DNA of 64,000 nt from Chlorokybus atmophyticus (lineage: Eukaryota; Plantae; Mesostigma and Chlorokybus algae), in NCBI GenBank assembly GCA_009103225.1, contig RHPI01000671.1:65531-129530 (forward strand), read 5' to 3'. Shown one piece after another: positions 23,401 to 61,305 of this stretch. The notes beneath the pieces were generated by a model. It was not told the origin of the DNA. It worked only from the letters and a program-made list of their open reading frames with translations, and ran no database searches. Within the stretch, counting starts at the first letter, position 1. The number at the start of each line of letters is the position of its first letter. The translations under genes were made by a program, and so were the position numbers.

Positions 23401-23779
23401 CCGGCCTTTCTTTGTGCAGCTCTTTGCATGCAATGTTAATGCACTGTGCATCGACAACAGATGCAACACAGCAGTGTTACAGCCCAACTTATAGGCCCAA
23501 TGAATTGACAAAGTTACAACACGCGTTGATACACCCATGTATTAGCCTCGTGGTGATACTCCGCTGAAGGAATCAACAACAAAACGTAACGACCTGACGG
23601 CATCGACAGTCCCAGCAGCAGGTGGCAAGCGATTGGCAGGCAAGTACGGTAAACAGAGGCACAACACGTCGGCGTCGTTGACATAGTCGACGTTGGCGTT
23701 GGCGGGGCAAAGGGAGAGCCTCTGTCGGGATTCTATCTATCGCTTGTGTGCGTACCTGGGGGTCTACAACGGCATCCAT
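20500..23779 (-). pseudogene. Possible decayed multi-exon gene in an AT-shifted gene-free interval
   Basis: ATG 23779 starts MDAVVDPQ followed by a GTACGC donor and an exon with loose F-box-like spacing (DADVLCLCLPYLP). Further AG/GT-bounded exon-like pieces lie near 22210-22290 and 20960-21000. No continuous frame could be built. Confidence 0.2.
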
Positions 23780-24063
23780 TGGACGTGCGTCTTCCACAGC
23801 GCAATCAACGGTTCAATACCTGAGACCACTGCTCAACCTCGTCTTGTTTGAGCAGTGAGGTCACCTGCACGGCAGCGTTGTCGGTGACACGTCAAAGTGG
23901 AACGGTTGTTGCTGGTCTCCCTCTCTTATCGGTGACTTTGTAGCTTGTATCCAGTAGCCAGCAAATATAAGCACAAAGGAGAGAAGGAAATCATCTCTCT
24001 CTCGCCCTTCATATACAGACGCAAAAGTCCGCAGCCCTGGCGTGCGCCAGGCGAGCGGCTGCT

Positions 24064-34479: not shown

Positions 34480-37400
34480 ATGGCCAACGTTGCGTTGACC
34501 CCCAACGCTGTCGCCAGGATCAACGGCGGCGAGGTGGAGTTCAAGCCTTATGTTCAGGTAAGCGCAGGGCTAGGGATGACTGGTTCAACAGCACCATACA
34601 CGTAGTTCTCTTTTTCTGTATGCTACAGTGCTGGTTAATGTACACGGAATCATACAGCAGTCTTGGTGCCTGTCAACCCGTAGTGCGCATACTTGACAAT
34701 GGTGACGGCACAGCGAACCGGTCGCAGCATGGGTCATTACTAGGCTTGAGCAGCAAGGTAGTGACAGAGTTGGAGGCACTGCGCGTTATATTGTGCGTTC
34801 GTTGCATAGCTTTATCACAATCAAGGTATACCTGCATTGTTGTAGTCGTTTAAGTGCATGTTGCAGCAATGGACTGTACTGTACTGTACTCATCGTCAAA
34901 CACAGGGATTCCATTGCGAGTTTTGTTCTTGTCGAGTAAAAACAGGCGCCAGAGTATGTGTAACAGGGGTGTGAGTAAGATAAGTGACCTTACTGCTCTT
35001 GTGCAGGTCATAGACGTGAAGCGGATTGGTGCAGCGGGTGGCGCTGGGAACCCCACGGAGAGGTACAGGTTACAACTGTCGGATGGGCAGTACTCGCAGC
35101 AGGGTATGCTCGCGACGCAGTTGAACCATCACGTTCAGAGCAACGCTGTCAAGCCTGGAACCGTGCTGCAGCTTGACGAGTTCATATGCAACACCGTTCA
35201 GAACCGCAGGTGCGCCTTGCATGTCAGTATTTGCTTTGCTCAAGTCTGGAATACTGTTTTCAACGTGTTTGCGTGCTCACATGGGTTTGTTATATAGCTG
35301 ATGCTTGTTCTTTTTAGGGTCATAATCATCCTCAGCCTAACGGTGGTTGCGGATCTGGAAGGCATCATTGGTAACCCTCAACCTTTATCAAATGACGGCA
35401 CACCAGCAGCGGCGCCGGCTGCGGCACCACCGCGCGCTGCACCTCCACCAGTCATGGAGCAGAAGCCTTTCCCGAATGGGCCTCCCGCAGGGAATGGAGG
35501 CTATGGCGGCGGGTATGCCAGCAGCAATGGGCCGCATGCAAACGGTGCAGCGGGCGGAGGGTATGCAGGCAGCTCATACGGTGGTGGTGCTGGTGCTGGT
35601 TACTCAAACGGCCCTTACGGTGCATCGCCTGCTCAGCCATCCGCTAGTGGTGCATATGGCAGTGCGTATGGCGACTCAACAGTTCCCCCACCGATGTACG
35701 GCCAGAACCGAGCACCTATTGCACGCAATCAAGCGCCAGCTGCCATCACCCCAATAAGAAATCTCAACCCATACCAGAATCGGTGGACAATACAGGTACA
35801 TCACTTCTTGGCTGCCCAACAGTTGGTGTTCCATGCTTCTCACGCAGTTCTCGTCTCCAATTGGTGGATGTTGAAGCATTAGCCGTAACCTCTTCATTGC
35901 AATGCAGGCACGTGTTGCAGCCAAGAGTGACATACGAAGGTATCACAATGCCAAAGGCGAAGGAAAGCTCGCCAGCGTTGACTTTGTAGACTCGGAATCT
36001 TGGGACATGCGAGCCACCATGTTTAATGACGCCGTTGACAAGTACTACGACATGCTAGAAGTGGGACGCATCTACTTCGTGTCCAAAGCCCAGCTAAAAC
36101 CTGCTAAGCGGGAGTTCAGCAACTGCAAAGCAGAGTACGAGATGACTTTCGACAACAACACTATGGTCGAGCCTTGCCCAGACTCAGACGACATCCCAAG
36201 GCAAACTTTCGAGCTGAAACCCATCAGCGTGATTGAGAACGCTGCCGCAGGTGAAATCCTAGATGTTATGGGTGTGGTTACAAGCATCAGCCAGGTGCAG
36301 AGCATACAGCGTAAGAACGGCCAGGAGACAACCAAGCAGACTATGCAGATCCTTGACCAGTCTGCTCGATCTGTTGAGATCTGCTTATGGGGAGACAAGT
36401 GCTTGAAAGACGGCGCCAAGATTGAAGGCATGATGAACGCTGGTGAGCGACCGATTATCGCTGTCAAGGCGGGTCGCATTAGTGACTTCAACGGCAGGTC
36501 TGTGGGCACCATCTCCTCAACGCAGATATCGATCAATCCGGATCTGCCTGCAGCCGCGCAGTTGCGTTCGTGGTATGACAGCAACGGCGCTTCAGCGATC
36601 CAGTCTGCTGTCAACTTGACTCACGTCTCGGGGGGCGGCACGGGAAGTGGAGTGGAGCTGCGCAAGTTTGTTGCACAGATCAAGGCTGAGCTTGGGCAAG
36701 GCGAGAAGCCGGACTGGGTGACGATTGTGGGCACCCTCACCTTTATGAAGGTAGACAGCATGAGCTACCCTGCCTGTCCAGAGAAGATCGGCGACAAGAA
36801 CTGCAATAAGAAGCTGCAAGATCAGGGCAACGGCACCTGGTACTGCGAACGATGCAGCAAGACTGTGACCGAAGCAACCAGACGCTACATCCTGAGCGCG
36901 TCTGTTTCTGATTGCACGGGTGCAGACTGGATCACAGCGTTTGACGAGGCTGGCACAGAAATGTTTGGGGTTGATGCCAACACCATGCACGAATGGAACA
37001 TCAACAAGGATCCGCGCTTTGCCGCTGCGTTGGACGATGTCAACTTCAAGTTGCGGACCTGGAAGCTTAAGGTTAAGCAGGAGACCTACAATGACGAGAC
37101 GCGCATTAAGAACACACTCGTCAAGAGCGAGCTCGTCAAGTTCGCCGCGGAGAGCGAAAGGATGCTGGACAACATTCAGCGCCTGCAAGCCAACCAGCCT
37201 GTCTACCAGAGCGTGAGCACGAGCAACGCTGCAGCAGCACCCGCAGCCTCATACGGCGGGTACAATCAGGACACCTATGGCACCAGCACGGCAACGCCCA
37301 CTGCAGCTTATGCTGGAGCTGGAGGATACGCTGCAAGCGGATATGGTGGTGGCGCCAGCAATGGCCCCGCGTATGGTGGTGGTGGCGGCGGCGCTGCCGG

Positions 37401-37975
37401 CGGTGGCGCTGCCGACGGCGGCAATAAGTGTTACAAATGCCAGCAACCTGGTCATTGGGCCAGAGACTGCCCGAATGCGGGGGGTAGCGGCGCCGGGACT
37501 TCGGGCGGGGGCTATGGTGGCGGAGGCTACAGCGGTGGCGGTGGCGGCGGGTATGGTGGTGGTGGGGGNNNNNNNNNNNNNNNNNNNNNNNNNNNNNNNN
37601 NNNNNNNNNNNNNNNNNNNNNNNNNNNNNNNNNNNNNNNNNNNNNNNNNNNNNNNNNNNNNNNNNNNNNNNNNNNNNNNNNNNNNNNNNNNNNNNNNNNN
37701 NNNNNNNNNNNNNNNNNNNNNNNNNNNNNNNNNNNNNNNNNNNNNNNNNNNNNNNNNNNNNNNNNNNNNNNGGGGGCGGAGGTGGTGGTGGCGGTGGTGG
37801 AGGTGGTGCTGGTGGTGGGAGTTGTTTCAAGTGCGGGGGGACGGGCCACTGGGCAAGGGATTGCCCGCAAGGTGGGGGCGGGGGTGGGGGCGGAAGCAGA
37901 GGGGGCGGGTATGGTGGGGGTGGCTATGGTGGAGGCGGAGGTGGCGGTTACGGCAGCTATGGGAAAGGGTACTGA
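34480..37975 (+). CDS. RPA1: Replication protein A 70-kDa subunit with Gly-rich C-terminal extension carrying CCHC zinc knuckles (RPA1C/E-like)
   Basis: DBD-F (YRLQLSDG), [25 protein letters not shown], Zn-binding DBD-C (YPACP...CNKK...CERC), then [14 protein letters not shown] and [14 protein letters not shown] in GGY repeats. An assembly gap interrupts the tail. Confidence 0.95.
37569..37771. other. Assembly gap (203 N) inside the Gly-rich RPA1 tail
   Basis: N run flanked by GGN repeats. Confidence 0.99.
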
Positions 37976-38993
37976 TTACCGTGCTGCCGTGTTGATTGTA
38001 GTCTTGTACAGAATACTGAAAGTTTGCCATTGTAAGCACCATTTTGCACAACAGTAATCACAGCATGAGCTGCACCACGAGTCGCAGAGAGCTTGACAAG
38101 CAAGAGTGCTTCTTGTTTGCAAATGCATGACTGTCCACGCGCGCAGTTACTTGGCGGCTTCCTACATCGTTTTGCTGTGTTGCCAGCAACCTTTGCACAA
38201 AACCTTTGCATGGACATCAGTTGATGATCTAGTATGGCACAAGACCATCAAGAAACAAATCAGTTCATACTAACTCCTGCCCCATGCCAGATCAGCGACT
38301 CATGCAAGGCAAGCATACTATCGTGCCACAGACTATCCGTCGTTTTATCAAATACCAAGTGGGCAGCAACGAAAATATCAACCCCTATTCGCAACGTGTG
38401 AGTATGGATTTTCCCCCCATTGAAAGCACAAAAAGCCCTAACCGTAACTTAATGAAGTATGGTCGCGGGGGTTCTACCGAAAATTGATAAATAAATCAAA
38501 GATACAAGTGGCGGGTAGTCCCTGGCACTACGGTAGTGCTGTTTGCTGTGTATCTGTCACACAGTACCGCGCATATTCACACAGATTCAACCACAATAGC
38601 ATGGACATGGAGATGAATGTGATGTAAGTTACCTTCGGCAACTGCAGTACTTGTGTGGACAACACCACGTGTGCAGCGCTGTCAACATTACCTAGTGATA
38701 TACCCAACATGTATAGGATATAGTATTGAGACTGCAAGTATGTCAATAAGCACATCACGCATTGGCGGAGCTAATGCAACACTTATCGTACAAATGCAAC
38801 CATGAATACCGCGCTAGAGACAGGCAAGAGTCAGAAGGAAGCTAGATACACCACGACATCTGACAAAACCAAGCTAGCCTAGCTCGTTCTACAAAACGCC
38901 AAGTGAGCAACAACAATGGATATGGACAAACAAATGGCAAGGAATCTACAACACCACAATGGCCGCAATCATTTGCGCCGCTCATCGCAGCAA

Positions 38994-45613: not shown

Positions 45614-47300
45614 TGTGGCATTTGTACGTCTAATCCTTTCTTGTACATCGATCGATGCAGTACCATTGAGTGCTGCACTTCCATCAATCGATGTTCAGAA
45701 AAGTTCTTCTTGTAGCACACAGCCCATGCGCTGTGCATTAGGCATCTGCATAAGCTGTCTGCGCAGCATGCTGAGTAGACTGGCTTGCCATGGCGGACAG
45801 GCATAGGATTGTTACATAACTGTTGGTAGTGGCTGCCACTGCAGTCAACCATCTGATGCGGGAGCAGTTTCAGCAGGACGAGTGTTTCTTCTAGGGTGTT
45901 CATTGTTTTCAGGCGCTAGCTGCTGGTGGGCTCCTCTTTGCTTGCAAAATGTAGGTTGGGACACATGGTGGCTAGTTTGTACATTGTTATTTGGGACATA
46001 AGTTGCTTACGATAATGGAATATAAACTTCTTCGTGAGCAACTTCAGATCAATTTCACTTGGGTTTCGTGTGTTGGATGGATGTGCTGATGTGTAGTGCT
46101 TCCCTTCAACTGTAACAACCTCTTTGCAATGACTTTGGGTTAAAAACTCTGGCAATAAGGACCTCCGCTTGTACAAGTGAGTAGTAATGTAAATCGACAG
46201 GCGGGACTCTTTGTCATGGTGATCAACTTGTAAAATACACAACAAGTATAGGGTTAAACAACCCTAACAATCCTAATCAAGTTGAGCTTGTTGCAACAAC
46301 TTCCAACGAGTTTAAACATCTTTGAAGTGCATCATCGATAGTTTGCATTTCATTTAGACACAAGGCACATAGGCTGATTGGTTATAACACATGCAACTGC
46401 ATGCACTTAAGCTCACACATGCATCATAGCAGCCAAACCAGCACACCAAGGAGCAGACGCGCATGCGCAAGTGACTCAACATGCATGCATGCTGATCTAA
46501 TGGGGGTCAGGGCTGTGGTGAAGCTAGGTAGTGAATTGGTCGTTGACTATGTGTAGCTCGATGGCTACTATCTTAGATGGTGATTGTTGGCATGTGCATT
46601 GCATTGCCACGTGTGCTGCGGATTCCGTATGTCAATACGGTTACATGCACCACATTGCACATCTTCTACACCAAAATGCAAGCAGAAAGTGACGGTAAGT
46701 CGCCGCGAGTGTCTGTCTTTGATTTATTGAATGCCTTTCTCACAATATGAATGATCATGACATGTGATGTATCACCATAATTACCCCGTAAGTCCCTTGA
46801 ATTAGTATTGGTGGGTAGTAGAAGTAGTAGCAGTCTCCTCATCGATTACATCAACGTGGTCTTCATCACAGATGTTATAATTTTCACATCCGGATGCTAT
46901 GACATGCGGCGGTTGCTTTACTTGCGCACGGTATGGTATAATGCAGATTTCACGTAAAACTCTGCTCCAATGCGCTTGTTGAGTGCATCATAAAACCAGC
47001 TGCAACAATTCATGCAACATAATACCAATACTCATAAGTAGCGCGCGCGCGCTACATTAACCCCATCTTATTGCGCTGCACATCACGCTTGATGTTATTA
47101 CTCACAAGTTGTGAGTAATAAAGTACCAATTGAGAGTTGTTGGTCACAACTCTCCTTACATATATATTGGCTAGCACGCATACGCACATAGATAAAAATA
47201 AGTTAATACGGTGGTGAACTTTCTTTTTGTGTGATATGCAGTATTTGCTTTTTTAGAGGGGCAATTTGGGTTTTATGCTATGTATGGGGAGGGGGAGGGA

Positions 47301-47406
47301 NNNNNNNNNNNNNNNNNNNNNNNNNNNNNNNNNNNNNNNNNNNNNNNNNNNNNNNNNNNNNNNNNNNNNNNNNNNNNNNNNNNNNNNNNNNNNNNNNNNN
47401 NNNNNN
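47301..47406. other. Assembly gap (106 N)
   Basis: N run flanked by G-rich sequence. Confidence 0.99.
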
Positions 47407-48587
47407 GGGGGTTCGTACATGCGTGCGAGCGCGTGTTCTCACTTATGTGTAAGTTGAGTTTATATATCACATCCTCATTGTGTCACACATAATGAGGTAT
47501 GTTATGACTCGTATGTACGTAAAGTTAACACCGACAATAATTCCCACATCAGTGATGCATCGATAAATTGGCAAAAGCTTATCGCGTTTAGCCAACACGA
47601 ACACGAACATTGCACAATGTGTATGTATGTACACGCGTTGAAAACAATGTTAATTATCAAAATTTGAGATGCAATTTATGGTGAAACCAATAAATCAAAA
47701 GCTATTTTGTGTGCATTACAATTGCAAAACCGCCCGGTGATAGGCGAATAACCGAAAAAGCCCATCTTTGTCAATTGTTTATTAAAGCGACAGTTTCCCT
47801 TGTTTCTGCAAAGTATATAATGTTATCATAGCGCCAAATAAACTACAACTCTCATTAACTTTTATAAATATTGTTAATATCATAATATATCATAACTACA
47901 TTAACGTTGGTGTTGCTGAGGCTTGTAAAAATCCCTACAAATCACAGCTCACGACACTCCATTACACTTTTGGGTCGTAATGTATATGGCAGTGCAGTAC
48001 TCAAAATCTATACAATAGAAGATTTGAGAGCTTGACAACTTAACCTAATTACCTCTTGAGCCTGTCATTCTACGGCTGAGCAAGCCACATTACATGCTGA
48101 CTTCCTTCCGGATCGAAACACCCGCGCCTGTCCTTGTGCGCACGATCTCGTAACGCTGCTGCGCACGTTGCGTTCCGTAACACAACCGCCGTGCGGCATT
48201 TAGCGGCGCACACTGCGCTCAAACTACAATCTCGCAGGCGGGCATCAGCGTTAGGAGGAGGGTTAGGGCATGCAGCGTGACTCGTGCTTACTGCCCGCTA
48301 GCTAACCTAACAATCAGGCACCACTGCTGCCGGGCTGCGCATTGACACGTGGCGTGGTCGCGGCGGCAGCGGTGGCGGAGGAGGAGGAGGAGGAGGAGGC
48401 TCGGAGTGGAGCCCGTGGACAACTTGCAGAGGCGAGGTGAATTCGTGTGCGGCATGTCAAGACGCTGTCACAGTTTGTGGGTGTAGCACGCCACTGGTGT
48501 AGGGGCAGTGGTTTGGCAGCTTGCTTGCTTGCTTGCCAGCTGGCTGGCTGGCTAGCAAGTAGTAGCTTCATGGTGTGAGGCTCGGGG

Positions 48588-51500
48588 ATGGTGACAACAG
48601 CGGAGGTGGAGCGAGCCACGGCTTTGGAGAAGTCCATCTCCTCGTCCTCCAAGTGCCTGCGCTTCGCCGTGCACTTCGAGACCAAAGGCGATGGCGCCGA
48701 GGCGGCCAACATGTACCAGGCTGCCTTGGGCCCTATGCTACAGGCAAGAAACCAACTTGCGCATGCATGCGACATTACCGCACTCACAGCGCAGCCGCTT
48801 ATGGCTTGCGCAGGTATTGGTTGAACGTCATGCCCCAACCGTCAATAAATACATGCTCTGTGATTGTGACAGTTGCAATTGTGTACTCGAAGCTTGCAAA
48901 CACCAATTGCACACAGCAAGCAGCAGATAAATGAACGAACGTGAGGGAGTGTTTGTGGGTTGAAGTGAGTGACATGGCATCGCTTTCTTGGTACTAATGT
49001 CGTGAAGCTTGCATGCCAATGTTTGACGTGATGGCGGCGTCAACAGGCGCTCAAGCTGTCCAGAGATGAGAGCCAAAAGAGGCAGCTCACCATCCAGATT
49101 CAGGGGTTATACAACAAGATAGAACTGTTGCGAGGAGGCAATTCTATTGGAAACGGGAACGGGAATGGGAATGGTAAGGGTACCGCCATCGTTGCAGAGC
49201 GCCCCTCCACTGTGTCACCTGAGCGCGCACGGTAAGCATGTATGAGACATCATCGCTGTTGTTGTACTGCTTGCGATCGAGTATAAACCGCAGTCTTACT
49301 GATGTAGAACTCAATTATCAAAGCCAAAGGTTGTTCGCACTTTACTGCCTACTGAACTCACAGCGTTCACTGGCAGTTGACACGTACACACACACGCATG
49401 TCTGCTGTTGCAGGTTGAATGTGCTTGCTGCGCGATTGTATGATGACCAGCAAGCACACGCCTCAACCAGCGCTCCATCCAAGCCCTCCTTGCATGTTCA
49501 GGCCAATGAGGCCCTTCATACGAATGGTCATAGCGATCAGAGCATGCGTGTAACCATTCCATCACCTTCAAAGCCCTTGCCTTCACTTCCCACACCAGTC
49601 GCCGCCTCTCCACAGCCTCGCAGCATGCGTTCACCCTCAGAAAACAGCAGGCAACCCTTCCCAGCCAACATCAGCTCATCGAGTACATCTCCCTCCCCAT
49701 CCACATCGGCATCCATATCGATAACAACTCCTCAAGAACGCTATGCTGCTGGCGTAGAGGTGTGTGCAACAATAAACGAGCGGCTTCATCTACTGCATGT
49801 GACCGTGTAAGCAACAACATCATTGGCTCATCAGGGCCTCATTCCTCTGGCGCGCTTGTACGTGAAAGAAGGCGTGCAGTACGATGAGAAGGAGAACTAC
49901 ACAAAAGCTCTGGAGCTGTACCACAAGGCCATTGCATGTTACAGGCTTTATATCCATCACACGGCAGGTGCAAACATGGACCGCATCAAGCCTTCAGCAA
50001 TTAATGGCTTCCGCCAGGCAAGTCCCACTGTGTTGGTTTGACAAGATTACGTGGCATGCATGTGTGGGGCTGAACGCATATGAGCCCATGCAGGTGGTGC
50101 TTCGGGCTGACCTGCTTGATTATCATTTGCGAGACACGCGCGCTTATGTTGCAAACCCTGCAAGCGGGCACCTGCCATATGCCATTCCACTGTCACCAAT
50201 ACAGACTACCATCGCTGCTAGTACTCCTCAAAAACACAAAAAGAGGTCCTTCATCAAGAAGTTGCTGGGCATCAAGCCAAAGCCGGTCGCGGGGCTGCCA
50301 GTTGTCATACAAACAGGTAAACAAAGAAACGCGTTGGTGTGTCATCCGCACATTGTGTGCGAGTTCCTGGTCTCTCATGACTGAACGTGCTCGCAGGCTA
50401 TGCATATGCTCCGCAGACGCCGGTTGCCTATGCAGGTCTGCTGTTGTTGTTGCCAAGACCCTGGTCATGTTCTTGCATGAATGGCATAACCGACACTGCG
50501 TGCAACACCAGGATCCCCAGCCTCAGTGTCCTCTGCAACACCAGTTGGGACGCCAGGACAAAGCCCATTTTCAGCTTACACGGTAATATGTAGAGTGTCG
50601 CACGTTTCATCTGTCTGCACTTGTTGCTCAGTTATGGAAGGATCAGCTCACTAACACTGCTCGGCTGCAGCCTTTTGATGATGCTGCTTTAAAGGTATGC
50701 CAGCTTTAACCAACTGCCGTTTGGCTGCCTTGTGTGGTCATGCTCATCGCGCATGCTATGAATAGGCGGCCACGGAGTTGTTCGAACGGGAAGCGGGCGC
50801 AAACAAGGAGGAGTTGGCGAAGCAGGGGCAGACGCTTGAGGAGATGAAGGCCATGCTCGAGCGCTTGACAAGGGAGGAGGAGCAGGTGTGAGTTGTTGCA
50901 TACTATTGTGCAAAGAGTTGTCGGTCGTTTACTCACCTGCACAGTTGCTTCTTAGCGCCGCCAAAAGACTGTTATGAATGTAGCTGCGGAAAACAACGGG
51001 TTCAAGTTGGCTGCTACAGCTATACTGGAAAAGTTACGGCAGCGCAGAAAGGTGTGCAGTCGTGTTGTGTGAAAGGCATATAGCTTGCATCAGTAGGATC
51101 AGATTGTGTACTCGATGCTCACCTGTGCGGATGCAGCGCGAGGAGAGCCAGCTGTCACCCACAGCTGAAAGTCAGACGAGCAGCACGTTTGAAGATCAGG
51201 CGGACTTTGATGACGAGGACGGCGATGATGATGCCTCCTCCTCGCATGCTGATCTGCCCACTTCAAGGTTTTCGCCAACTGTTGAAGTGGATGAGAGCAA
51301 CTCCCAAGTGTCACCAACTGCTGAATGCTCTCAAGGTAGACATCTGTTACCATGCTGCATTATCGTGTGCAAGCCTTGCTTCATGTAATTGATGGCTGGT
51401 GCAGGTAGCGACAAGCTGCAAGCGCTGTTGTCTGCGGCCACATGCTCTGACGAAGAGCTGGACGGCTCATTTGCGGATTCAGATGGCGGCCTCCTGTATC

Positions 51501-53871
51501 TAACTGAGCCGCAGGATGAGCTGCCGTCCGTACCTTCGGCACCAATGAAGCCCAGGCCTCCTCCGCCTAGCCGACTGCCAAGGTATGTTCGTGGGTGTTG
51601 CAGACTCGATTTTACATGATGCCTTGACACTGAGGTTGTTTGATTGGTGCCCACAGCAAGCGGCGTGAGGAGCAGGAGGCGAGCATGCTCGTGCTGGAAG
51701 AACCGCTGTTATCGGAGGAGGCCCTCAGGGCCAAGCGCAGCGTTGCTCAGGTTGGGACCAATATTGAGGAGCGGCGGCTTGAAATGAACAGCACAGAGTC
51801 TGGCATACAAACTGAGAAGCCGACTGACTACCCAAGCCATCAAGTCCCGCGTAGCGCTCCTGTCCCGCCACCTCCTCCACCACCACCCATGCTGTTGCTA
51901 CCCAAGCTCTCACCAGGAGCTCCTCCTCCCCCGCCACCCCCACCAGCACCGACAATGCTTTCAAAGCCACGACACGCAGCAGGCGTGCCTTCCCCTCCGC
52001 CGCCACCACCTCCCCCACCAGGGTTGCTAAAGCCCATCAGTGGTGCTGTCCCCATGCCACCTCCCCCGCCGCCACCGCCCATGGGAGGGCTACCGCTGCT
52101 CAAGAAGGGCCCTTCAGGTCCTCCTCCTCCCCCTCCTCCGCCTATACCTGCATCACTTGTCAAGAAGAGCGTTGATGATGAGGACTTTGAGTGGGGTAAG
52201 GGTCCACCGGCACCGCCCGCGCCGTCCATGAATGGCAACGCACCTGCAGGAGATGAAGATGACTGGGCCAAGTCGAACATGGTGAGTGTGCCCCTGCATG
52301 CAGTATTGTTGTTAGACTACCTGTGTCACGTGAAGTTTTACTCACCTGCTGCTGCCTTGTGCTGTGAAATGACTTGCGCAGGTGCTGAAGCTCTACAGAG
52401 ACTTGAACAGGCCGATGGGACTGGGACAGGGTGGCGGAGTGATCATCCAGAAGTCTGCGCGGGTGAGTAGTGTGCCCGTTGTGGTTTCACATTGTGGGCT
52501 TGTGCTGTGCTTATTGACAGGCATGAATTTCATTGTCATTTGCAGCCTGAGGACGCTGGAGGCCTAATGGATGAAATGTTGGGCAAGAGCAACTATGCCA
52601 AGGTGCGGGTTGCATTTGAGCAAGTGCGTCATCAGCAACATGGCAAACATTCAAATATTGAATAAGTTAGTCGCATTATCTGAAGCAGATCACTTGGTAA
52701 ATTGATAGTGCATGCTGGAGAGTCAATGTAGGTCATGTAGCTTATACGCCAGCTTCAAATGCAGGCTGTGCAAGAAGATGTGGAGCGGTATGCTGGCATG
52801 ATTGAGAAACTGGCTGTTGAAGTCAAAAAGCTCCGCGCTGCTGATATGAGCGAGGTTTGTTCACTGCTTGCTGCACTGCATCCTGGTGTTGCTTGTGACA
52901 CGCACGAGGACGTGGTCATCGTCTGCTTGTTGAAGGGTGTCAAGTTGCAGAGGCTGATCGTTCTGCTGCCACCAGGCTGAAGCTTTTGTTCAAGAGATGA
53001 ACAAGCGACTGGACAAGCTTACCGATGAAGCTGCCGTTCTCAAACACTTTGAGTGGCCAGAAGCCAAGGTCAATCTTTCATCGTGATGTCAAGACCACCT
53101 AAGTCCTTTTTATTCACGTATAGATGCTTGCTCATCAAGTTACAGGCATTAATGCTCAGTCTACTGACTAAGCTCTATGCTCGTGCAGGCTGACTCCCTG
53201 CGCGAGGCCGTGGCGCTTCACAAGGACCTCACGTCCAAGCGAGAGGCGCTGCTCCAGGTTGGCGGGGTGGGTTCTGCCGCCGTCTCGCGCATCGACGACG
53301 CCCTGACCAGAATCACCAACATTTTTGAGAACGTGCAGAAGAAGGTTGAAACTTTCCAGCGCTCTCAGGTGTGTGTCACCATGCCAGCGTGCGCGAGTGT
53401 GTGTTTGCGGGTGTACGCAAAGGTCTCATCAATGTGAATATTTGTGACTGACTGAAACCTGTGTATATGTACAGGATGCAACAAAGAAGCGGTTCTCCGA
53501 GCACGGCATCCCCTTCGACTTCAACATCGTGAAGAGGTTACAACGCGCATCCTCCAAGGCCGCAGGGGCGTACTTGCGGCGAGTCCTTGATGAAGTTACA
53601 GGTCAGAAAAACCTGCCATCAACTTCACAATGCGGTGTATGTATGCAGTCTGCCGTATTAACAACGTGCGTGTTGCTTCTTTTACTCAGGCGGCAATTGC
53701 AGTCAAGAGAAGGCGTACTCCCTGCTCGTCTCTGCCGTGCGCTTCACGTTCCGAGTGCATCAGTTTGGTGGCGGGCTCGACAAGGCGACGCTCAACGCCT
53801 TTGAAGAAGCCAGCGTGTTGCTGCAGGAGGTGGCCGAGAACACCTCTGAACAGCAGCAGCAGCAGAAATAA
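48588..53871 (+). CDS. CHUP1/IPGA1-family protein with two N-terminal MIT domains, a coiled coil and an FH1-like polyproline tract
   Basis: The C-terminal exons match the CHUP1 C-domain: AVQEDVE...LAVEV, LTDEAAVLKHFEWPEAKADSLREA, HGIPFDF, AYLRRV, LLVSAVRFTFRVHQFGGGLDKATLNAFEE. The N-terminal exons read as two MIT three-helix motifs. The exons I traced from 48588 to the stop at 53869-53871 join in phase. Confidence 0.9.
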
Positions 53872-55339
53872 AGGTCATTGCTTCCAGACTTGACCCGTGC
53901 GTTGCTTGTGTACATGTACTTTATTTGCCACAGTTGGCACCTGTGAGGTTGGTAGTTGTCATCATCAAAGCCCCCAACGCGGGCATGGTATCTAAGTGTC
54001 CGCATGGCATGAATATGAATTACCTTAGTTGCTGGAAAGGTGCATGCCGCTGCTCAAAGCACCTTTTCAAAGCGTATGTGGAGCTCCGATCAGAACCACT
54101 AACTCAGTTGCCAACCCTTGCACTGTGCTTCAGTTGTGATTATGGAGTGGTCATGCTGGCCTGATTGTGTCATGCTTTGCTTGAATTTCAACAGTAGCTG
54201 TGCGGGCTTAAACACAACTGTTCTTGAGCAACAACATCAACACTACCACAGCCAGATACCCACGTGTGGTGACCATGCATGCACTCAAATCAGCAGTACA
54301 CTTGGAGTTACCACTATACCATTGTAAGTTTTCCACACGGCAATGGGATGATGCAACACCATGATGGCGGCGAATGGAGAGGAGAAATGCTATTACTTGT
54401 AGTCGACAAACGTGTAATATATATCAAGGTTGTACTGTCTAGGTTGCAGCTGTGGCACTTTGCTGCGTATGCGTGGCATTGCGCAGCTAGCATGTAGAGG
54501 CAGAGGCACGGACGCTGTGCTGGCGGCTGCGGCGGTGTAGTTGTGTAGGCGTGCTTGCATGCCGCTGGCATGCGTGTGAGTATGCTTGTGCAGTGATAGG
54601 CAGGGATGACAGTACGTAGCTTGGTGTGACGATGTTGACAGAAGGCCCATGTACTGAAGAGTCAGAGGCACTATCACAAACCAAGGTTGATATTGTATCA
54701 ATTGTACTTGCTGATGCAGCATCATCAGTTCCTTGCAGGCAAGCAGTTAATGGATGATTACTATTCCCATGCTGCACTGTTGCACATCACAATGGATGAG
54801 CCGTATGCTCTTTATCGGTTAGCTATATTTACAGCGCGATCGTGATAACAACAGCAGTATTACATAAGCGTGCAAGTCAGCATTCGTCCAAATTTGCATT
54901 GCACGATCGCTTCGGTGATCTTGATACGAGCGTCTTGATATGGTTGAAGTTAATGGTGTCATGCGCGTACGTGTCTGCGGCGCATCGGTTATGAAGGTTT
55001 TTGGGAGTTGTATGGTAGTTGTGGCAGCTCAAATGGTTAAAGCGGTTGAGGCATGGTAGGAGGGTATGTACGTGTTCTTTACTTGTATTGCAGCTAGTTG
55101 AGCGCAAGTCCCTTGCCTTGAGTGCCACAGTGTGCATGTGCTTGGATATGCTTGTGTGAAGTGTATGAGCGTATGCCACACCTTGCAAACGGACTTAGCC
55201 TTATCTCCCCGTGCATTACATGCCAATTGCAAATATAAAAGCATGTGCTTAAGTCTACGTTGGCTAAGCCACGCGCTTGTTACTTGCGCTCAACCCATTG
55301 GCATAAAGGTGTGCGGGTGTTTGTGTTTGTGGATGTGGA

Positions 55340-57790
55340 ATGCCCATGGAAACAAGGTCAGAAGCTGGTCTAAAGGCGCTTAAAGTCCCCTTGAAGGAGA
55401 GAAAAGAGGTGCCCGAGAAGGAGGTGCCTACTTCCCCGAGCGAAGGAGACTTCGAGGACGAGCCAGCTGGTGACAAGGAAGACCACGAGGATGTTGAGGA
55501 GGTTGAGAAGGAGGAGCTAGATATGATGGACACTTTGTCGAAGACGGAGATGGAGGGTGCACGCACGCGTTTCAGCGGTCATTCGGCACAACACATTGGA
55601 GCTACAAGACTTCAATAATAGGCTCGAGTGTCGCATAATCAGCTGGTCGGCACGTGACAAGTCATGGAGTGAGCACAAAGCATTGAAGATGATGCCCGAG
55701 TTCTTGGAGGATGAAGCTTTAGGCACGTGAAGGGAGGTCAAGAGGAAGTTGGAGGCACGAGAGGAGGTGTGTAGAGCTGATCATGCAGCTGAATGTGAGA
55801 AAGAGTGGGCCAAAGTGCAGCCCACGAAGGAGTGCATGGTGGTGTTGACGTATCGTCGATTGCGTATCTGTCGACGTATCCGCAATCGACGCCGGCAAAG
55901 ATGATAGAGCTGATGTACTTCAAGCGCAAGGATGGTGAGACTCCACACATGATGTACACGAGGATGGTGAAGTTGTTGGAGGACACGGAGGATGAGGTTG
56001 TGGCTAACAAGATGGCGGCGGTGCTGTACTTGCGTGCGTTGGAGGATGGCTTGAGGGAGGCGGTGCAGACCGTGTTGCGAGGAGCACATCAAGGCGCAAG
56101 CTACACGCTTCGTGACGTCTTCAGTTGCAGTCGAGAACGCCCAGTGGCGGCAAGAGTATGAGAAGAGCATTGGCTAGATGGCGGAGGGCATGGCGACGCA
56201 GCTGTCGGGAGGTACAAGCGCAACGATGCTGGTCGGCGTGATGGAGGGTGAGCTACAGTCACCAAGTCAGCCCCGGGGAGGAGTGTGGTGGTTGCGAACG
56301 GCGTTGCCATGAGTGCACGGCATAAGGAGCAGCAAACAGGAGTGTGTTGGAGGTGTGGATAGGCCGGACACATAGCCAAGTATTGTGCAAAGAGGCAAGG
56401 CCTTCTGTGTTCGTTGTGGGAAGGCGGGCCATGATGACAATGCGTGTTGGAGCAAGCATCCGCACTTGCGCGCTGAGGTGCTGAGCGGCAAGACGATGAC
56501 CAGGCAAGCACATTCAGCTCAAGCGGGAAGCTCACAAAGCCATGCGGAGCTGGCGCGTGCAAGTGAGGTGTCCGCGCCCGTTGCCGAGGTGGCGGAGTTG
56601 AAGGCGCTGGCGGGGCTGCGCTCGCAGGCGGAAGGCAAGCAAAGGGTGTCCGACAGGAGAAGGATGATGATGATGGAGGTGCCTACGCGTACTTGGCGTA
56701 TAGCGTGGCGTGGTGCAGCCCGATGACGGCTGCGGCAGCTACGGGGACTGCGCGGGCTGCGCCACCACCTACAGCGGCGGTATCGCCCTACATGCAAGGC
56801 AAGGGGTCCCGCGTTGCAGCCTCGAAGGTTTATAAAGTTGCTGGGGGTCATGAGGAAACTGTTTACACCAGCTGGTGCACGTTCACACGCGGTATCGGCA
56901 CCATTGACGGCGACGGCAGGAGGCCATGCACCTGCGCCAGCCATGAAGGTCACCTTCATGGCTGGCGCAGCGCCGACAACGCCGACATGGTGTCGGCGTT
57001 GTCGGCGTCGACATTGCCTTCGATGAGGAGGTTTGTGAGTGTGGAGCAGCATGAAGGCATGCGTATCGATGTGAAGAATGATGTGGATAAGGGCAAGATG
57101 CAGTCCATGAAGGGTTTGGCAAGTTGGTTGGAGACAGCGAGTGCGCATGTTAGCCCAGCATGTGCGCGCGTCATGAAGGTGCCAACGGCGGATGCAAGTG
57201 CAGTCCATGAGCTGGCGGGAACGCTTCGCTATCAGCCATGTTGACGCTGAAGGATGTCGGATGTACTTTGGAGCGTTTGGAGTGCATGTTGGGGCACGCG
57301 ACAGCCGATGCAATTACGCAAGTCACTTCCGATTGCGAGGCAAATGTGAAGAGTGAGAAGGAGTTTGAGGCAGTCATTTATGAGGAAATGGAGCTTCATG
57401 GAGTGACGGATGGTGAGCAAGAGCTGGAGGTGGAGGTGCCGATGGTGGAGGTGACAAACGGCATGCACATGGAGGTGGTGAAAGAGCCGGTGCAGCTGGA
57501 CTTGTCGGCGGCGTTGTCGAGACCAACGGCGAGGCTTCATGTTGTTACAACGGTGGCAGCGGTGGACAACACACATGGTCATGTGCAGCTGATGGGTACA
57601 CACCGGAGTGCGTGCTCGTGGACACATGTGCACAACCGGTGATACTTGAAGAGAAAGCGGCGGCGCGCATGGCGTTGCAGTCAACGGATTGGGGGCCATG
57701 TCCGTGGCATCTCAAGACAACTGGAGGAGGGTTTGAGGCCGTGTTTGTAGTGACATTGAAGCTCGTGCAGATCCAGTTGATGCGCGCTTG
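55340..57790 (+). mobile_element. Decayed LTR-retrotransposon remnant (Ty3/gypsy-like gag plus aspartic protease; no RT or integrase seen)
   Basis: Gag-like FKRKDGETPHMMYTRMVKL, two CCHC knuckles (CWRCG-stop-AGHIAKYC at 56345-56386; CVRCGKAGHDDNAC at 56406-56447), protease-like VLVDTCAQPVIL at about 57612-57650 (DTG mutated to DTC), many stops and frameshifts, and no introns. Confidence 0.75.
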
Positions 57791-58101
57791 TTTGTGAGTT
57801 TCATATCATATGTATGTACGCTTGTGGGGCAGCTTCGGGAGTCTCCTGAGCTAGCATACATGCATGGAGGAAGCTACAACGTGTGAAGATGGAGAAGGTG
57901 CAGCATCATGAGACCATGACGAGCTGGACGACATCCTCCAGCAATGACGGGAGATGGCACGACAATGGCGTAGGGTTTTAACATCACGGCAATTCAATGC
58001 TGAAACGAGCAAGTGTTTATGAAACCTGTATTGCACTGCTTGACCGCGTGATCGATATTAATTACAACTGCCTCACAACTATTGTATGCACCCCCGAAGC
58101 A

Positions 58102-58619: not shown

Positions 58620-59875
58620 GGATATCATGATCTATAAAACAGTTGACGAATCAAAAGCCTGCGGGGGTGAGTGGGTGTGTCAACCGCACACTGTACTTGT
58701 GCTGCTATGCTTACAGGTTGCACGAACATTATGGTTATTGCGGCCTGCGGTTGACACATGCAGCTCATATAAATACTTCATGTGCAAGAAGATGTAGATT
58801 ATTAAACTGGCCGCCGTAATCAAGAAGCTTAGCGCTGCTGATATAATTGAAGTTTGTACTATTTTTGTACTACACTACTTGGTGCACTCCGTCCCTGTAG
58901 TGCTTGTTGGGTTCGCACCCACCCAACATGAGAGAACGTGGTCCTTGTATTTTGCTTGTTTAAGGGTGACAAGTCGTAGAGGCTCATCATGCTGCCACCA
59001 GGCTAAAGCTCATCCTCAAGAGATGAACAGGCAATTGGACAAGCTCAAAGATGAAGCTGCCGCTCTCAAACAATTTGAACAGCGGCCAAGGTGAGGAGTG
59101 TCTCATGGAGATGCTTGGATTTGAGTACCTCAGGAGTACTCCTAAATGCTTGCCCAACCACCCAACAAGTTACAAGCAGCATTAATTCTGAATGTGTTGA
59201 CGCTTATCGCTTTATTTTCATGCGGGCTGATTTGCTGCGAGAGCTCTCCTCGAGGCCATGGTGCTTCACAAGGATCTCACGTCCAAGCGCGAGGCGCTGC
59301 TCCAGGTTGGTGGTGTGGGTTCCGCACCCGTCTCTGGCATCGATGACGCCTTGGCAAAACTTACAAGTACTTTTGAGACCGTACCGAAGGTGGTGTAGAA
59401 GCTGCAACGCTCTGAGGTGTGTGTCAGATATGCGTGCATGTGTGTGCGAGCTTACGTGTGCGTTCGCGTGTTGTACATGCGCGCATGTGTGTGTAAGTTT
59501 GGAGTTTATGCGCAGGATGCAACCAAGCAGAAATACACTGAGCACGGCATCCCCTTCGACTTTAACATCGAGAAGGTTGTACAACGCACATCCTCCAAAG
59601 CTGCAAAAGCGTACTTGCGGCGGGTCTTTAACGAAGTCACAAGTAATACAAACACACAACTTCACAAAGCATACAACGTATGCAGTCTGTCCCGTATTAA
59701 AACACACGTGTGGCTACCTTTGCTCTCAGCTGGCAAATGCAGTCAAGAGAAGGCCTCCTCCCTGCTTGTCTTTGCCGTGCGCTTTACATTTCAAGTGCAA
59801 CAATTTGCTAGCGGCCTCGACAAGGACACGAACGCTTTCGCAGAAGTCAGCGTGATGCTGGAGGAGGTAGTCTAA
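58620..59875 (+). pseudogene. Pseudogenised tandem duplicate of the CHUP1-domain exons of the 48588-53871 gene
   Basis: Exon and intron homology to about 52380-53871, with a premature TAA at 58803, a TAG at 59396, an 11-nt frameshifting insertion near 59255 and loss of the WPE motif. Flank homology continues to about 60290. Confidence 0.9.
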
Positions 59876-61305
59876 AATGCTTCCAAAGAACATCAGCATA
59901 AGTAATGCAGCTGGTGACTTTCCTGACTTTGACTCACGCGCGTGCTTCGAAGTTGTGTATGGTAGTGTATAGAGGTGTTTATACTATCATTAGTGCCACA
60001 ATTGAGACTTGAAGTGTAATTGGTTCAGTATTGCTGCAAATGCGGTCGTGGCTATCCTAGTTTCCGCACGTTATGTTAATATGTATCACCATAGTTGCTG
60101 CTTGAGTGAGCACCCTGTCGCTCCTCAAAGCACCTGTTTATCAGCTAGCATATGATATGAAAGAGGATGCAGTATGTGGAGCTCCAGTTGGGACTAATGA
60201 TAGTTGCCAACACTTGCACTGTTGTGTGCTGCATTAGCTGCGCAAACGGGAGTGATCACAGCTGCCGGACCACACCCTGCTTTGCTCTGTCTTCTTCCCT
60301 TGCTAAGGTGTGCAGTAGCTCTGACCGGGCGCAAATGTCTCTATCAAGCTACTGACATTTTCAATTGCAAAGTAGTATGTTAGCTTTACCCTGGGCCGTA
60401 TGTCATGTTCGAAGCTGTACAGAAAATGCGTGCCATCTATAGGGTATGCATCGTAGTCATCCCACAAACATGCTCATTTGCACACAAGAACAACTCACCA
60501 ACACCAACACCAACAGAAATATTACAGCCGATGTGTGTGTGCCTCGCGCAGCTAGCCATTGGCCTGAGTTTGCTTGTCAGCAACTTTTATGATGGTTATG
60601 TGGATCTGTTTTAACCGAGCTAACAGTAAATGTATCAGTCAATTAGCAGCAACACACTGTAGCACCGATGTACATTTCCAATGTTACATTCAGCAGCAGG
60701 ATGATGGACGAAGGTGGTGATGGATATATATGATTATATACTACAAGTAGCAGCAGCAGATGTGTTGTGACTATGCCACTGCGGCGACAAAGGTTTCTTT
60801 AAGAAGTTGCCTAGACAACATTATCATTCAAACAGGAGTATTGCCAATGCGTGGTTTGAATATAATCAGCGTACTATGTTGCACTTATCCTCATGCACAC
60901 GATAACATTCACTTTAGAAACAGATATAACCACACTCAGCATGCTCATTTTGGGCAGAATGATTTGTGACAACCTACTTTCTTACCCAGTTGCAAGCGTC
61001 ACTGTTGCATAACTAGCAATATCATCACTCTCACCGCATTGCAAACATCCACAACACGTTCACAAGATATACTGGCACACGTCACAAAATTTGCATTATT
61101 GGCGCACTATGTCGCGACTCTAGCGTACAGCGCTGCCTACCTGCCTGGCTTATGTTGCCACAATCTCTGTCACACACATACTAGCCCTAGAGTTACACAA
61201 TGTGTATCCCCTACCCATACCGCGGCATCCATCCCTTCTCTCACCCCCGCAACTTCCCTATTCCGTTACACTATGCATTACACTTACACGCTCTTCCTAC
61301 CACAC

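Follow-up and report, generated by a model that had tools for sequence, protein, structure and literature searches.

Can the actin-assembly module of CHUP1, the protein that moves chloroplasts in plants, be directed to membranes coated by ESCRT-III? A gene of Chlorokybus atmophyticus, an early-diverging streptophyte alga, raises this question, as it seems to join a probable pair of MIT domains to the CHUP1 actin module. The gene lies in a stretch of 64,000 nucleotides, here called the window. The first-pass annotation of this DNA stated that no characterised protein is known to have this architecture, and indeed our search of the literature found no description of a MIT-MIT-CHUP1-C protein.

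Gene structure and public annotation

The gene was modelled by hand. Its 19 exons join in phase into one open reading frame of 1071 codons (3216-nt coding sequence, no in-frame stop), as the first-pass annotation had read it. The strings quoted there were all found in the window, and its exon joins are the two GC-AG junctions of our model. The ATG is preceded by an in-frame TGA at a distance of 12 nt. All acceptors are AG, and the donors comprise 16 GT and two GC, the latter with the sequence CAG/GCAAG (exon/intron) at introns 1 and 4. The GC content is 0.57 in the exons versus 0.48 in the introns.

A HMMER search with exon 19, run exhaustively, retrieved a public model of the same gene, P0001 (1072 aa, eukprot jgi/Chlat1/3076/Chrsp21S03329, Chlorokybus atmophyticus), which could be rebuilt exactly from the window sequence with 20 exons. 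Since P0001 covers a span identical to that of the hand model, an independent annotation likewise calls one gene. Four splice choices differ. Through a GT donor at 48668 the public model loses 25 residues of MIT1, through a GT donor at 50035 it inserts 6 residues within MIT2, it contains an extra exon of 39 nt, and its donor at 52623 lengthens the protein by 7 residues which are present in no homologue. With a donor-flank matrix trained on the gene's other 15 donors, the GC donors score +6.3 (intron 1) and +7.4 (intron 4), and the GT donors of P0001 score -7.0 (MIT1) and -2.3 (MIT2). Judged by these scores, the public model appears to have missed the predicted GC-AG introns, on which both MIT-like units depend, and this would be the reason why P0001 truncates MIT1. 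The features of the gene are collected in Table 1.

Table 1. Features of the Chlorokybus gene in positions of the window
Feature	Position	Strand	Basis or remark
Whole gene	48588..53871	+	19 coding exons, 1071 codons; hand model and public model P0001 over the same span
Exons 1-7	48588-48743, 49047-49231, 49414-49759, 49835-50017, 50094-50316, 50512-50582, 50671-50694	+	
Exons 8-14	50766-50885, 50956-51051, 51137-51335, 51405-51582, 51657-52281, 52382-52462, 52546-52602	+	
Exons 15-19	52765-52854, 52976-53068, 53189-53368, 53475-53601, 53690-53871	+	
Optional extra exon, public model only	50397-50435	+	39 nt
MIT-like unit 1, residues 22-80	48651..49130	+	Split by GC-AG intron 1 (48744-49046); Pfam MIT, PDB, donor flank
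Ser/Pro-rich linker between the MIT-like units, exon 3, residues 114-229, probably disordered	49414..49759	+	Translation
MIT-like unit 2, residues 232-303	49841..50132	+	Split by GC-AG intron 4 (50018-50093); Pfam MIT, PDB, donor flank
Short basic patch, residues 337-354, KHKKRSFIKKLLGIKPKP	50232..50285	+	Sequence reading only
Probable coiled coil, residues 389-468, exons 7-9	50671..51051	+	Sequence reading only: charged, heptad-like stretch
FH1-like proline-rich region, residues 664-756	51865..52143	+	Five runs of 8-9 Pro
Short N-terminal helix of FH2-like module, VLKLYRDLNRP	52382..52423	+	Counterpart of CHUP1 716-755 dimerisation helix
CHUP1-type FH2-like C-domain, residues 836-1052 (217 residues), exons 14-19	52564..53811	+	PDB, Pfam, BLASTP
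Ala897, at Arabidopsis CHUP1 Arg820 position (actin contact)	53030..53032	+	8wag alignment
Phe1032, at CHUP1 Phe958 position (dimerisation), conserved, in RFTFRVHQF	53749..53751	+	8wag alignment

The two N-terminal helical units

Two helical units stand at the N-terminus on either side of the Ser/Pro-rich linker, for which the Pfam scan of P0001 gave no family. MIT is the top Pfam family for each unit, with E-values of at most 1.4e-5 in both, but the scores stay under the gathering score of 30 bits of Pfam MIT (PF04212). Joined over the intron, the first unit reaches 28.1 bits (E = 2.1e-6, profile positions 6-64 of 66); from exon 1 alone the score is 13.6 bits. The second unit scores 27.1 bits (E = 4.5e-6) from exon 4 alone and 25.5 bits when joined. 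Its alignment spans profile positions 7-33 only and leaves the third helix unaligned; this helix ends in LRADLL, which resembles the RAE.L motif of MIT domains. Taken together, the scores of the two units would pass 30 bits for the whole protein.

Searched as single sequences against PDB, the units give weak matches (E = 0.004-0.36) with TPR proteins alongside. The best full-length alignment of MIT1 is to the MIT domain of MITD1 (1wfd) and the best single match of MIT2 is the tandem MIT of calpain-7. A profile built from both units matches solved MIT domains over three helices, namely structures of MITD1, an archaeal Vps4-like MIT, calpain-7 and the MIT of VPS4A/B (E = 5e-4 to 0.014, up to 67 positions). 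The best of these, MITD1 and the archaeal domain (E about 5e-4), align at positions 12-69 and 11-77, whereas TPR structures align over positions 12-39 only, that is, over one hairpin. An AlphaFold2 model of MIT2, computed from the single sequence with the 6-residue insert of P0001, has three helices at a pLDDT of 48 and is unusable.

We also considered a TPR repeat protein, which would have at least three tandem 34-residue repeats, and rejected it. There is one TPR-like hairpin per unit, some 150 residues of disorder lie between the units, and each is isolated with disorder on both sides, unlike the repeats of TPR arrays. To TPR_1/2, MIT2 scores 18 bits only, in one stretch. Judged by sequence, the N-terminal units are probable MIT domains. 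The two MIT domains announced by the first-pass annotation hold as the top family for both units, but the bit scores and the fold model fall short of a firm assignment.

The CHUP1-type C-terminal half

In the middle of the protein the probable coiled coil has a counterpart at the equivalent place in relatives (weak Pfam coiled-coil-type matches). The polyproline runs that had been reported are present, and they sit directly upstream of the C-domain module. In CHUP1 the corresponding polyproline region binds profilin (bioRxiv 10.1101/2020.01.14.905984). In the alignment the short helix VLKLYRDLNRP stands opposite APEVLELYRELNRP in Mesostigma and APELVEFYQSL in Linum CHUP1; the 'RAPE' with which the dimerisation helix starts is absent.

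The C-domain is a complete CHUP1-type domain, again in agreement with the earlier reading. It matches PDB 8wag/8waf (Arabidopsis CHUP1 716-982) with E = 3.2e-34 over positions 45-268 of the 272 of the chain (phmmer), and Linum CHUP1 with E = 6.9e-28. P0001 carries a precomputed Pfam PF26700.1 assignment, and the identity to algal homologues is 36-42% (BLASTP). For CHUP1 numbering we used the 8wag alignment (offset 710), which places R820 and F958 both correctly. At the R820 column we find Arg in six of eight homologues, His in one and Ala in the window protein only, where the context reads DEAAVLKHF versus DERAVLKHF. The C-terminal part of CHUP1 polymerises profilin-actin in vitro, and the R820D mutant is inactive in vitro as well as in planta (bioRxiv 10.1101/2020.01.14.905984). 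Since an arginine essential for the actin activity of CHUP1 is an alanine here, nucleator activity is not to be assumed. In our reading of the alignment Ala897 lowers the confidence in activity, not in the homology to the CHUP1 C-domain.

The N-terminal half of CHUP1 has no detectable counterpart. BLASTP to Linum CHUP1 aligns residues 823-1068 only, and no similarity to its coiled coil and F-actin-binding region was seen. A hydropathy scan found no N-terminal hydrophobic envelope anchor: the maximal Kyte-Doolittle mean over 19 residues is 1.01 and falls outside the N-terminus, compared with 1.7-2.2 at residues 1-19 in Linum CHUP1 and in four CHUP1s from metatranscriptomes, and the in-frame stop lies just upstream of the ATG. 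The protein is therefore of the 'CHUC' type and not CHUP1 proper, which is a protein of the outer envelope of the chloroplast. CHUC proteins, the CHUP1 C-half without the N-half, occur in Coccomyxa, Micromonas, Guillardia and land plants (Kong et al., bioRxiv 10.1101/2020.01.14.905984). Like them, the window protein has the C-half of CHUP1 behind an N-half that is unrelated; no N-terminal domains were described for them by Kong et al., whereas here the N-half would be MIT-MIT. With Arabidopsis CHUP1 (At3g25690) it has in common an upstream coiled coil (probable here), the FH1-like polyproline, the dimerisation helix and the full FH2-like C-domain with F958. It differs by the two MIT-like units in place of envelope anchor and N-half and by the exchange of R820 for Ala. 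The CHUP1-type C-terminal region is also common to IPGA1, IPGAL1 and IPGAL2 of Arabidopsis, which however are land-plant specific and have no reported MIT; IPGA1 is microtubule-associated. The layout further recalls the formins, whose FH1-FH2 arrangement places a profilin-binding proline-rich region before a dimeric helical domain which adds actin at barbed ends, and the CHUP1 C-domain structurally resembles FH2. A formin as such was rejected, as the Pfam scan of P0001 contains no FH2 family and there is no sequence homology.

Relatives, alternative readings and proposed function

In the sister alga Mesostigma and in at least four algal metagenome lineages a VHS-like domain is found upstream of the CHUC module, and in three of these five lineages also UIM-like motifs. 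VHS and UIM form another endosomal-sorting module. For Mesostigma, alone among the five, the VHS fold is backed by a predicted structure (pLDDT 83.5), whose top 22 Foldseek matches are all VHS domains (STAM2, GGA1-3, TOM1, STAM1, Hrs; TM about 0.7). Its UIM is located downstream of the VHS domain (Pfam E = 1.6e-3). The Mesostigma viride protein Mv12749 (P0010/P0017) has a targeting module, coiled coil, polyproline and C-domain in the same order as the Chlorokybus protein; it differs by having VHS and UIM instead of MIT and by retaining R820. An HMM built locally from the VHS-like domain matches L004 and L015 at 5e-10 and 2e-7, but gives no match in the window protein. The latter also has no match to the UIM pattern, and a tblastn search of the whole window for a VHS-like exon gave no match.

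In a tree of seven C-domain sequences the Chlorokybus gene groups with the VHS-UIM form of Mesostigma (93/93). It is therefore most likely that the MIT-MIT pair took the place of a VHS-UIM module or originated next to one; in that case streptophytes would have invented the chloroplast anchor separately. The first-pass annotation had supposed that the envelope anchor was replaced by tandem MITs; the protein has indeed no anchor, but the direction of the change was probably misjudged. Searches of homologues, including algal metagenomes and metatranscriptomes, found no other protein with MIT and CHUP1-C, and MIT-MIT was seen in this gene only, so that selection on the fusion is not demonstrable by conservation.

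As the fusion was found in no second organism, a gene-model artefact has to be considered, in which prediction would have fused two head-to-tail neighbours, a small gene for MIT-MIT made up of exons 1-5 and a CHUC gene of its own that begins near exon 8. Read-through of the exon 5 donor would lead to a stop after 22 codons, and exon 8 offers an in-frame Met. However, exon 5 and exon 6 are separated by 195 nt, the widest non-coding gap 3' of MIT2, and no two exons by more than 303 nt, so that a 3' UTR followed by a promoter and a 5' UTR would not fit in between. The linker exons are all in phase with good splice sites, the JGI model joins the same exons, and in the relatives, too, the coiled coil is preceded by a targeting domain at the N-terminus. 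Thus, in our view two separate genes are very improbable. Less easily dismissed, though still unlikely, is the view that the N-terminal units are generic MIT/TPR-like binding modules with a partner outside ESCRT-III, for example a protein of the plasma membrane or chloroplast envelope. The protein would then act in organelle positioning or on cortical actin as CHUP1 does, recruited via a protein partner and not by a membrane anchor. The sub-threshold MIT scores, the scoring of TPR families and the poor fold model of MIT2 would fit; some MIT domains do bind non-ESCRT partners, and the coiled coil of CHUP1 is thought to bind a plasma-membrane protein. On the other hand, MIT scores above TPR in both units, the three-helix alignments are those to MIT structures, and the VHS-like domains of the relatives, some with UIM, point to the endosomal pathway and not to plastids.

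A different doubt concerns the effector. Because of the exchange of Arg820 for Ala and the altered dimerisation helix, the C-domain might no longer polymerise actin, and the protein could be a dimeric scaffold, a profilin- or actin-binding adaptor, or a microtubule factor like IPGA1. That the Ala is peculiar to this sequence and that R820D abolishes activity speaks for such a loss, but R-to-A is a milder change than the tested R-to-D, and the protein retains F958, the remainder of the domain and five long runs of prolines, which is what one expects of a working FH1/FH2-like pair. A role at microtubules could draw on IPGA1, which has the common C-terminal region and binds microtubules, and on katanin and spastin, which carry MIT domains. 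The MIT domains themselves, however, bind ESCRT-III and not tubulin, and in the IPGA1 literature consulted we found no mapping of its microtubule binding to the common domain. We consider the loss of actin assembly improbable.

We tentatively suggest, as a reading that is quite possible but which we would not yet call probable, that the gene encodes an anchor-less CHUC protein whose two MIT units site CHUP1-type actin assembly at ESCRT-III membranes. From N- to C-terminus there would be a MIT-like unit, a disordered linker, the second MIT-like unit, the coiled coil, an acidic disordered region, the FH1-like polyproline, the dimerisation helix and the FH2-like domain. The two MIT units would set the location, since they would bind the MIM motifs that ESCRT-III subunits carry in their tails. 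The C-terminal half would dimerise, and profilin-actin on the proline runs would feed filament assembly, as in Arabidopsis CHUP1. Filaments would thus be made at ESCRT-III-coated membranes, for example at multivesicular endosomes, and possibly at the division site or at sites of membrane repair. The literature search returned no experiment linking any CHUC protein to ESCRT.

The logic would be that of spastin, whose MIT domain brings a microtubule-severing AAA enzyme to ESCRT-III (CHMP1B/IST1) sites: MIT domains together with an effector that remodels the cytoskeleton. Unlike spastin, which disassembles microtubules, the Chlorokybus protein would assemble actin, and the effector domains are not homologous. 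Two MIT domains within one N-terminus are also known from Vta1/LIP5 and calpain-7, but there they are adjacent and packed together, whereas here some 150 residues lie between them, and the effector differs.

To a coupling with ESCRT, which we infer and consider plausible, the VHS-like and UIM relatives lend independent comparative support. In these sister lineages the same actin module would be aimed one step earlier in the pathway by the VHS-like domain, with the UIM where it is seen, and this step would be the binding of ubiquitinated cargo in the manner of ESCRT-0 or TOM1. The VHS-UIM module in place of the MIT domains in algal relatives suggests that the first workplace of this actin machine may have been at endosomal sorting sites.

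Exon structure of the gene and its surroundings

Three-frame translation of 48400-54100 together with the raw sequence resolves the window gene into exons that join into a single ORF (see table). All acceptors are AG, 16 donors are GT and two are GC; the GC donors belong to introns 1 and 4 and both lie in the context CAG/GCAAG. The introns are 69-303 nt long and have a GC content of 0.48, compared with ~0.57 in the exons. The annotated ATG is probably the true start codon, since an in-frame TGA lies 12 nt 5′ of it with no AG between them. A 28-nt intron after exon 3 was discarded, and the donor GAG/GTGTGT at 49759, the same as in the public model, was preferred. The peptide strings quoted in the first-pass annotation are all found in the gene, and the junctions marked in them are the two GC-AG junctions. 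Each of these two introns interrupts one MIT-like unit, at differing positions within the domain.

With exon 19 as query, HMMER was run exhaustively against 1.84 billion representative proteins. It returned few close relatives and, with 100% identity over the query, the public model of the same gene (P0001, 1072 residues). Its source name, jgi/Chlat1/3076/Chrsp21S03329, leads to Chlorokybus atmophyticus, an early-diverging streptophyte alga. P0001 can be exactly reproduced from the window sequence with 20 exons over the same span as our hand-built model. Thus, an independent annotation likewise calls a single gene. The two models part at four splice choices (see table), where ours is the one backed by homology. 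At donor 52623 the public model is wrong, because its seven-residue insertion is missing from all eight aligned homologues. A donor-flank matrix trained on the other 15 donors of the gene scores the GC sites at +6.3 and +7.4; the GT sites of the annotation reach -7.0 and -2.3. When exon 1 and exon 2 are joined via the GC donor, the Pfam MIT score rises from 13.6 to 28.1 bits and the profile coverage from 5-32 to 6-64; a Pfam scan of P0001 does not detect the first MIT. P0001 is probably mis-spliced at both GC-AG introns. Being restricted to GT donors, it deletes helix 2 of MIT1 and places six additional residues into MIT2 and seven into the FH2-like domain. In practice, automated annotation of domains would miss the probable first MIT because of this likely splice error.

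Positions of the gene, of the splice sites that differ between the two models and of neighbouring features in the window
Feature	Position	Remark
AT-rich stretches	20001-24000 and 46001-48000	GC 0.38-0.44 vs ~0.52 elsewhere
RPA70-type ORF	35902-37995 (+)	697 codons, uninterrupted
Window gene	48588-53871 (+)	19 exons, ORF of 1071 codons
Donor of intron 1	GC 48743; P0001 GT 48668	25 residues lost in P0001
Intron 1 (GC-AG)	48744-49046
(Gly-Asn)n short repeat GNGNGNGNG	49140-49175	immediately 3′ of MIT1
Donor of intron 4	GC 50017; P0001 GT 50035	6 residues gained in P0001, within MIT2
Intron 4 (GC-AG)	50018-50093
Additional exon of P0001	50397-50435	39 nt, in phase, in disordered linker
Donor ahead of FH2-like insertion	52602; P0001 52623	7 residues gained in P0001, within FH2-like domain
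Probable degraded Gag region	~55400-57900 (+)	between gene and tandem copy
Partial diverged tandem copy	58804-59906 (+), also 60039-60138	70% nucleotide identity to 52807-53869 over 1134 nt

The second AT-rich stretch lies just 5′ of the gene, possibly as its intergenic or promoter region. The final five exons of the gene, introns included, are present in the tandem copy, as is part of the 3′ flank. We weighed whether this downstream CHUP1-C-like match (~58.8-59.9 kb) is a further functional paralogue and decided against it; the match looks like a pseudogene remnant, because it carries in-frame stops (e.g., in the equivalents of exons 17 and 19) and frame breaks in the equivalents of exons 15 and 16. 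The region ahead of it shows broken frames, CCHC zinc-knuckle remnants (e.g., CWRCG.AGHIAKYC near 56.3 kb) and a strong G-over-C skew; these are probably the remains of a retroelement Gag region, and the intact ORFs tested there had no Pfam match. The RPA70-type ORF encodes the large subunit of replication protein A, in which OB folds are followed by a CCHC zinc knuckle at the C-terminus (Rep_fac-A_C, E = 2e-41; REPA_OB_2, 2e-25; zf-CCHC, 6e-9).

CHUP1-type module and MIT-like units

The first-pass annotation described polyproline runs followed by a complete CHUP1-type C-domain, and both are borne out. The coiled coil ahead of them is a putative one, recognised by eye. Five runs of 8-9 prolines occupy residues 664-756, at the site of CHUP1's profilin-binding FH1-like region. 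Residues 790-1072 of P0001 match the CHUP1 crystal fragment 716-982 (PDB 8wag) with E = 3.2e-34 over positions 45-268 of the 272-residue chain, and the C-domain of the window gene matches Linum CHUP1 with E = 6.9e-28. In the alignment with homologues the short helix VLKLYRDLNRP is present ahead of the FH2-like domain. Exon 17 by itself did not retrieve CHUP1 in a PDB search.

The polyproline region and C-domain of CHUP1 polymerise profilin-actin, the protein forming a formin-like dimer (Kong et al., bioRxiv 10.1101/2020.01.14.905984). With an offset of 710 both residues mutated in that study map correctly onto the 8wag chain. The dimerisation residue F958 is kept as Phe1032, and the actin contact R820 corresponds to Ala897. 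The mutant R820D of CHUP1 neither polymerises actin in vitro nor moves chloroplasts in planta (Kong et al., bioRxiv 10.1101/2020.01.14.905984). Arg occupies this position in Mesostigma, three algal metagenome sequences and both land-plant sequences; one sequence has His, and only the window gene has Ala. The homology of the C-domain to CHUP1 is secure, its actin activity is not.

The envelope anchor of CHUP1 is missing, as had been claimed: hydropathy over 19 residues reaches at most 1.01, at an internal position, compared with 1.7-2.2 at residues 1-19 of Linum CHUP1 and of four CHUP1-type ORFs from metatranscriptomes. Upstream of residue 803, BLASTP finds no similarity between the window protein and any relative. 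Searches of the word-indexed collection with the N-terminal 360 residues, saturated by low-complexity words, and with MIT2 alone returned only the window protein itself.

For both units of this N-terminal half MIT is the top Pfam family, MIT1 (residues 22-80) with E = 2.1e-6 and 28.1 bits and MIT2 (residues 232-303) with E = 4.5e-6 to 1.4e-5 and 25.5-27.1 bits, against a gathering score of 30 bits. TPR_1/2 reaches 18 bits and on unit 2 only. In single-sequence searches of the PDB, where MIT and TPR matches are mixed, unit 2 matches best the tandem MIT of calpain-7 with a weak E of 0.004, and the joined unit 1 aligns over its full length to the MITD1 MIT with a weak E of 0.36. We then aligned the two units to each other. 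The resulting profile matches MITD1 (5.3e-4, positions 12-69), a Sulfolobus Vps4-like MIT (5.5e-4, positions 11-77), calpain-7 (0.005) and VPS4B/SKD1 and VPS4A (0.007-0.014), and natural MIT domains are matched over most of its length. Designed consensus-TPR proteins outscore the MITs, yet their scores are summed over many repeats and they cover just a hairpin of 20-28 residues (positions 12-39). Unlike TPR arrays, the units are solitary and stand ~150 residues apart in Ser/Pro-rich sequence. We therefore regard both as probable MIT domains, MIT1 more firmly than MIT2. Both scores stay below the 30-bit threshold, and an AlphaFold2 model of MIT2 with the public-model splice (P0001:197-292, single sequence) was discarded at a pLDDT of 48.

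Relatives and their heads

The reach of our family survey is set by word-indexed searches and by the 35-bit threshold applied to a 59-residue query. The C-domain region yielded two plant proteins only, in a search whose 5-mer requirement restricts matches. Full-length among the close relatives are Mv12749 of Mesostigma viride (P0010/P0017), a marine-metagenome cluster (P0008/P0024) and a further cluster with a Prasinoderma singulare transcript (P0047) among its members. Pfam finds no MIT in any of the three. Instead, Pfam matches the N-terminal half of Mesostigma weakly to VHS (E = 3e-4) and to UIM (E = 1.6e-3); in P0047 both matches are weaker still. The N-termini of these three lineages can be aligned with one another. 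A profile of them ranks the VHS domains of STAM2, TOM1 and GGA2 on top in the PDB, with E only 0.1-0.3. A PDB search with the Mesostigma N-half sequence alone found nothing; the VHS assignment required this profile and a structure model. When the Mesostigma domain was modelled with AlphaFold from the three-lineage alignment (pLDDT 83.5, pTM 0.79), the best 22 Foldseek matches of the model were all VHS domains (TM ~0.7, rmsd 2.4-3.2 Å over ~140 residues). UIM-like motifs follow the VHS-like domain in the Mesostigma, P0024 and P0047 lineages. The isoform P0017 (Mv12749-RA.5) differs from P0010 (RA.3) by a 92-residue insertion within the VHS domain, which would break the fold and thus resembles a retained intron or mis-splice in that model.

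Scanning JGI metagenome contigs with the C-domain alignment gave 51 loci, from which 17 match-containing ORFs were taken. A local VHS-like HMM matches two more lineages, L004 (8054-10657; 4.7e-10) and L015 (935-3757; 1.7e-7), in which no UIM-like motifs were seen. These two share with P0024 and P0047 the order VHS-like domain, coiled coil, polyproline, CHUP1-C. In these uncultured algal lineages, which come from marine and other metagenomes, the VHS-like domain is too divergent for detection by Pfam. Prasinoderma is the only taxonomic link of the metagenome lineages. The same fusion elsewhere, a point raised by the first-pass annotation, was not encountered: a local HMM of MIT1 and MIT2 matched solely the window protein among the metagenome ORFs and relatives, Pfam found no MIT in 10 of the metagenome ORFs, and no second species with MIT plus CHUP1-C emerged from either method.

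The heads of the 23 full-length, near-full-length or partial proteins scored fall into four classes. CHUP1 proper has the hydrophobic anchor, five lineages have a VHS-like domain (three of them with UIM-like motifs), the plant CHUC/IPGA-like proteins have the coiled coil only, and MIT-MIT is found in Chlorokybus only. In a maximum-likelihood tree of seven C-domains, too small for rooting or for excluding paralogy, Chlorokybus and Mesostigma form one group (93/93) and the two land-plant sequences another (100/100).

Possible role at ESCRT-III membranes

MIT domains bind MIM motifs in ESCRT-III tails, and ESCRT-0 and TOM1-type proteins bind ubiquitinated cargo through VHS and UIM. We suggest that the CHUP1-family proteins share a common actin module which would be aimed by interchangeable heads. 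Of the three heads that can be recognised, two are those of the ESCRT pathway, and we therefore tentatively take as the most likely reading that the Chlorokybus protein would assemble actin filaments at ESCRT-III-coated membranes. Its nearest functional analogue is spastin, whose MIT domain brings a cytoskeletal enzyme to ESCRT-III.

That two genes were fused in the model is highly improbable. The longest non-coding gap 3′ of MIT2 is 195 nt (80 nt if the additional exon of P0001 is real), and the linker exons are all in phase with good splice sites; a terminator, a promoter and UTRs would thus not fit. The public annotation also joins the same span, and the relatives show the same order of targeting domain, coiled coil, disordered region, polyproline and C-domain. 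The helical units, MIT-like at scores below the Pfam gathering score, could bind a partner outside ESCRT-III, which we consider unlikely. Quite unlikely is a loss of the polymerase activity through Ala897, possibly with a microtubule role like that of IPGA1; the inactivity of R820D in CHUP1 speaks for it.

Actin assembly at ESCRT-III sites would also fit into a wider and rather doubtful scenario. The first role of the CHUP1-type actin-polymerising module might have been that of an endosomal sorting effector of green algae. In most lineages VHS plus UIM would have brought it to ubiquitinated cargo, and in Chlorokybus tandem MIT domains would have placed it directly on ESCRT-III polymers. The chloroplast-moving CHUP1 of land plants would have come later, when this head was exchanged for the envelope anchor.

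The name CHUC for the anchor-less proteins comes from Kong et al., who regard their function as unresolved and do not describe their N-termini (bioRxiv 10.1101/2020.01.14.905984). In full-text literature searches we found no paper that combines CHUP1 with "MIT domain", VHS or Chlorokybus, or Chlorokybus with ESCRT, and no description of an actin nucleator with a MIT domain, in line with the earlier statement that no characterised protein of this architecture is known. The VHS-like/UIM head of the other algae, and the whole architecture of the uncultured lineages, likewise seem to lack an earlier description. The Chlorokybus protein belongs to a known family and bears a new head.

In summary, one actin module is found on three heads, the chloroplast anchor, VHS with UIM motifs and MIT-MIT, two of which are ESCRT-pathway heads. 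If the endosomal origin is true, the Chlorokybus protein would be the first known actin assembly factor that docks on ESCRT-III. If confirmed, one polypeptide would couple membrane remodelling by ESCRT with the local assembly of actin, and domain swapping would be shown as a route to a plant-specific organelle-moving machine.
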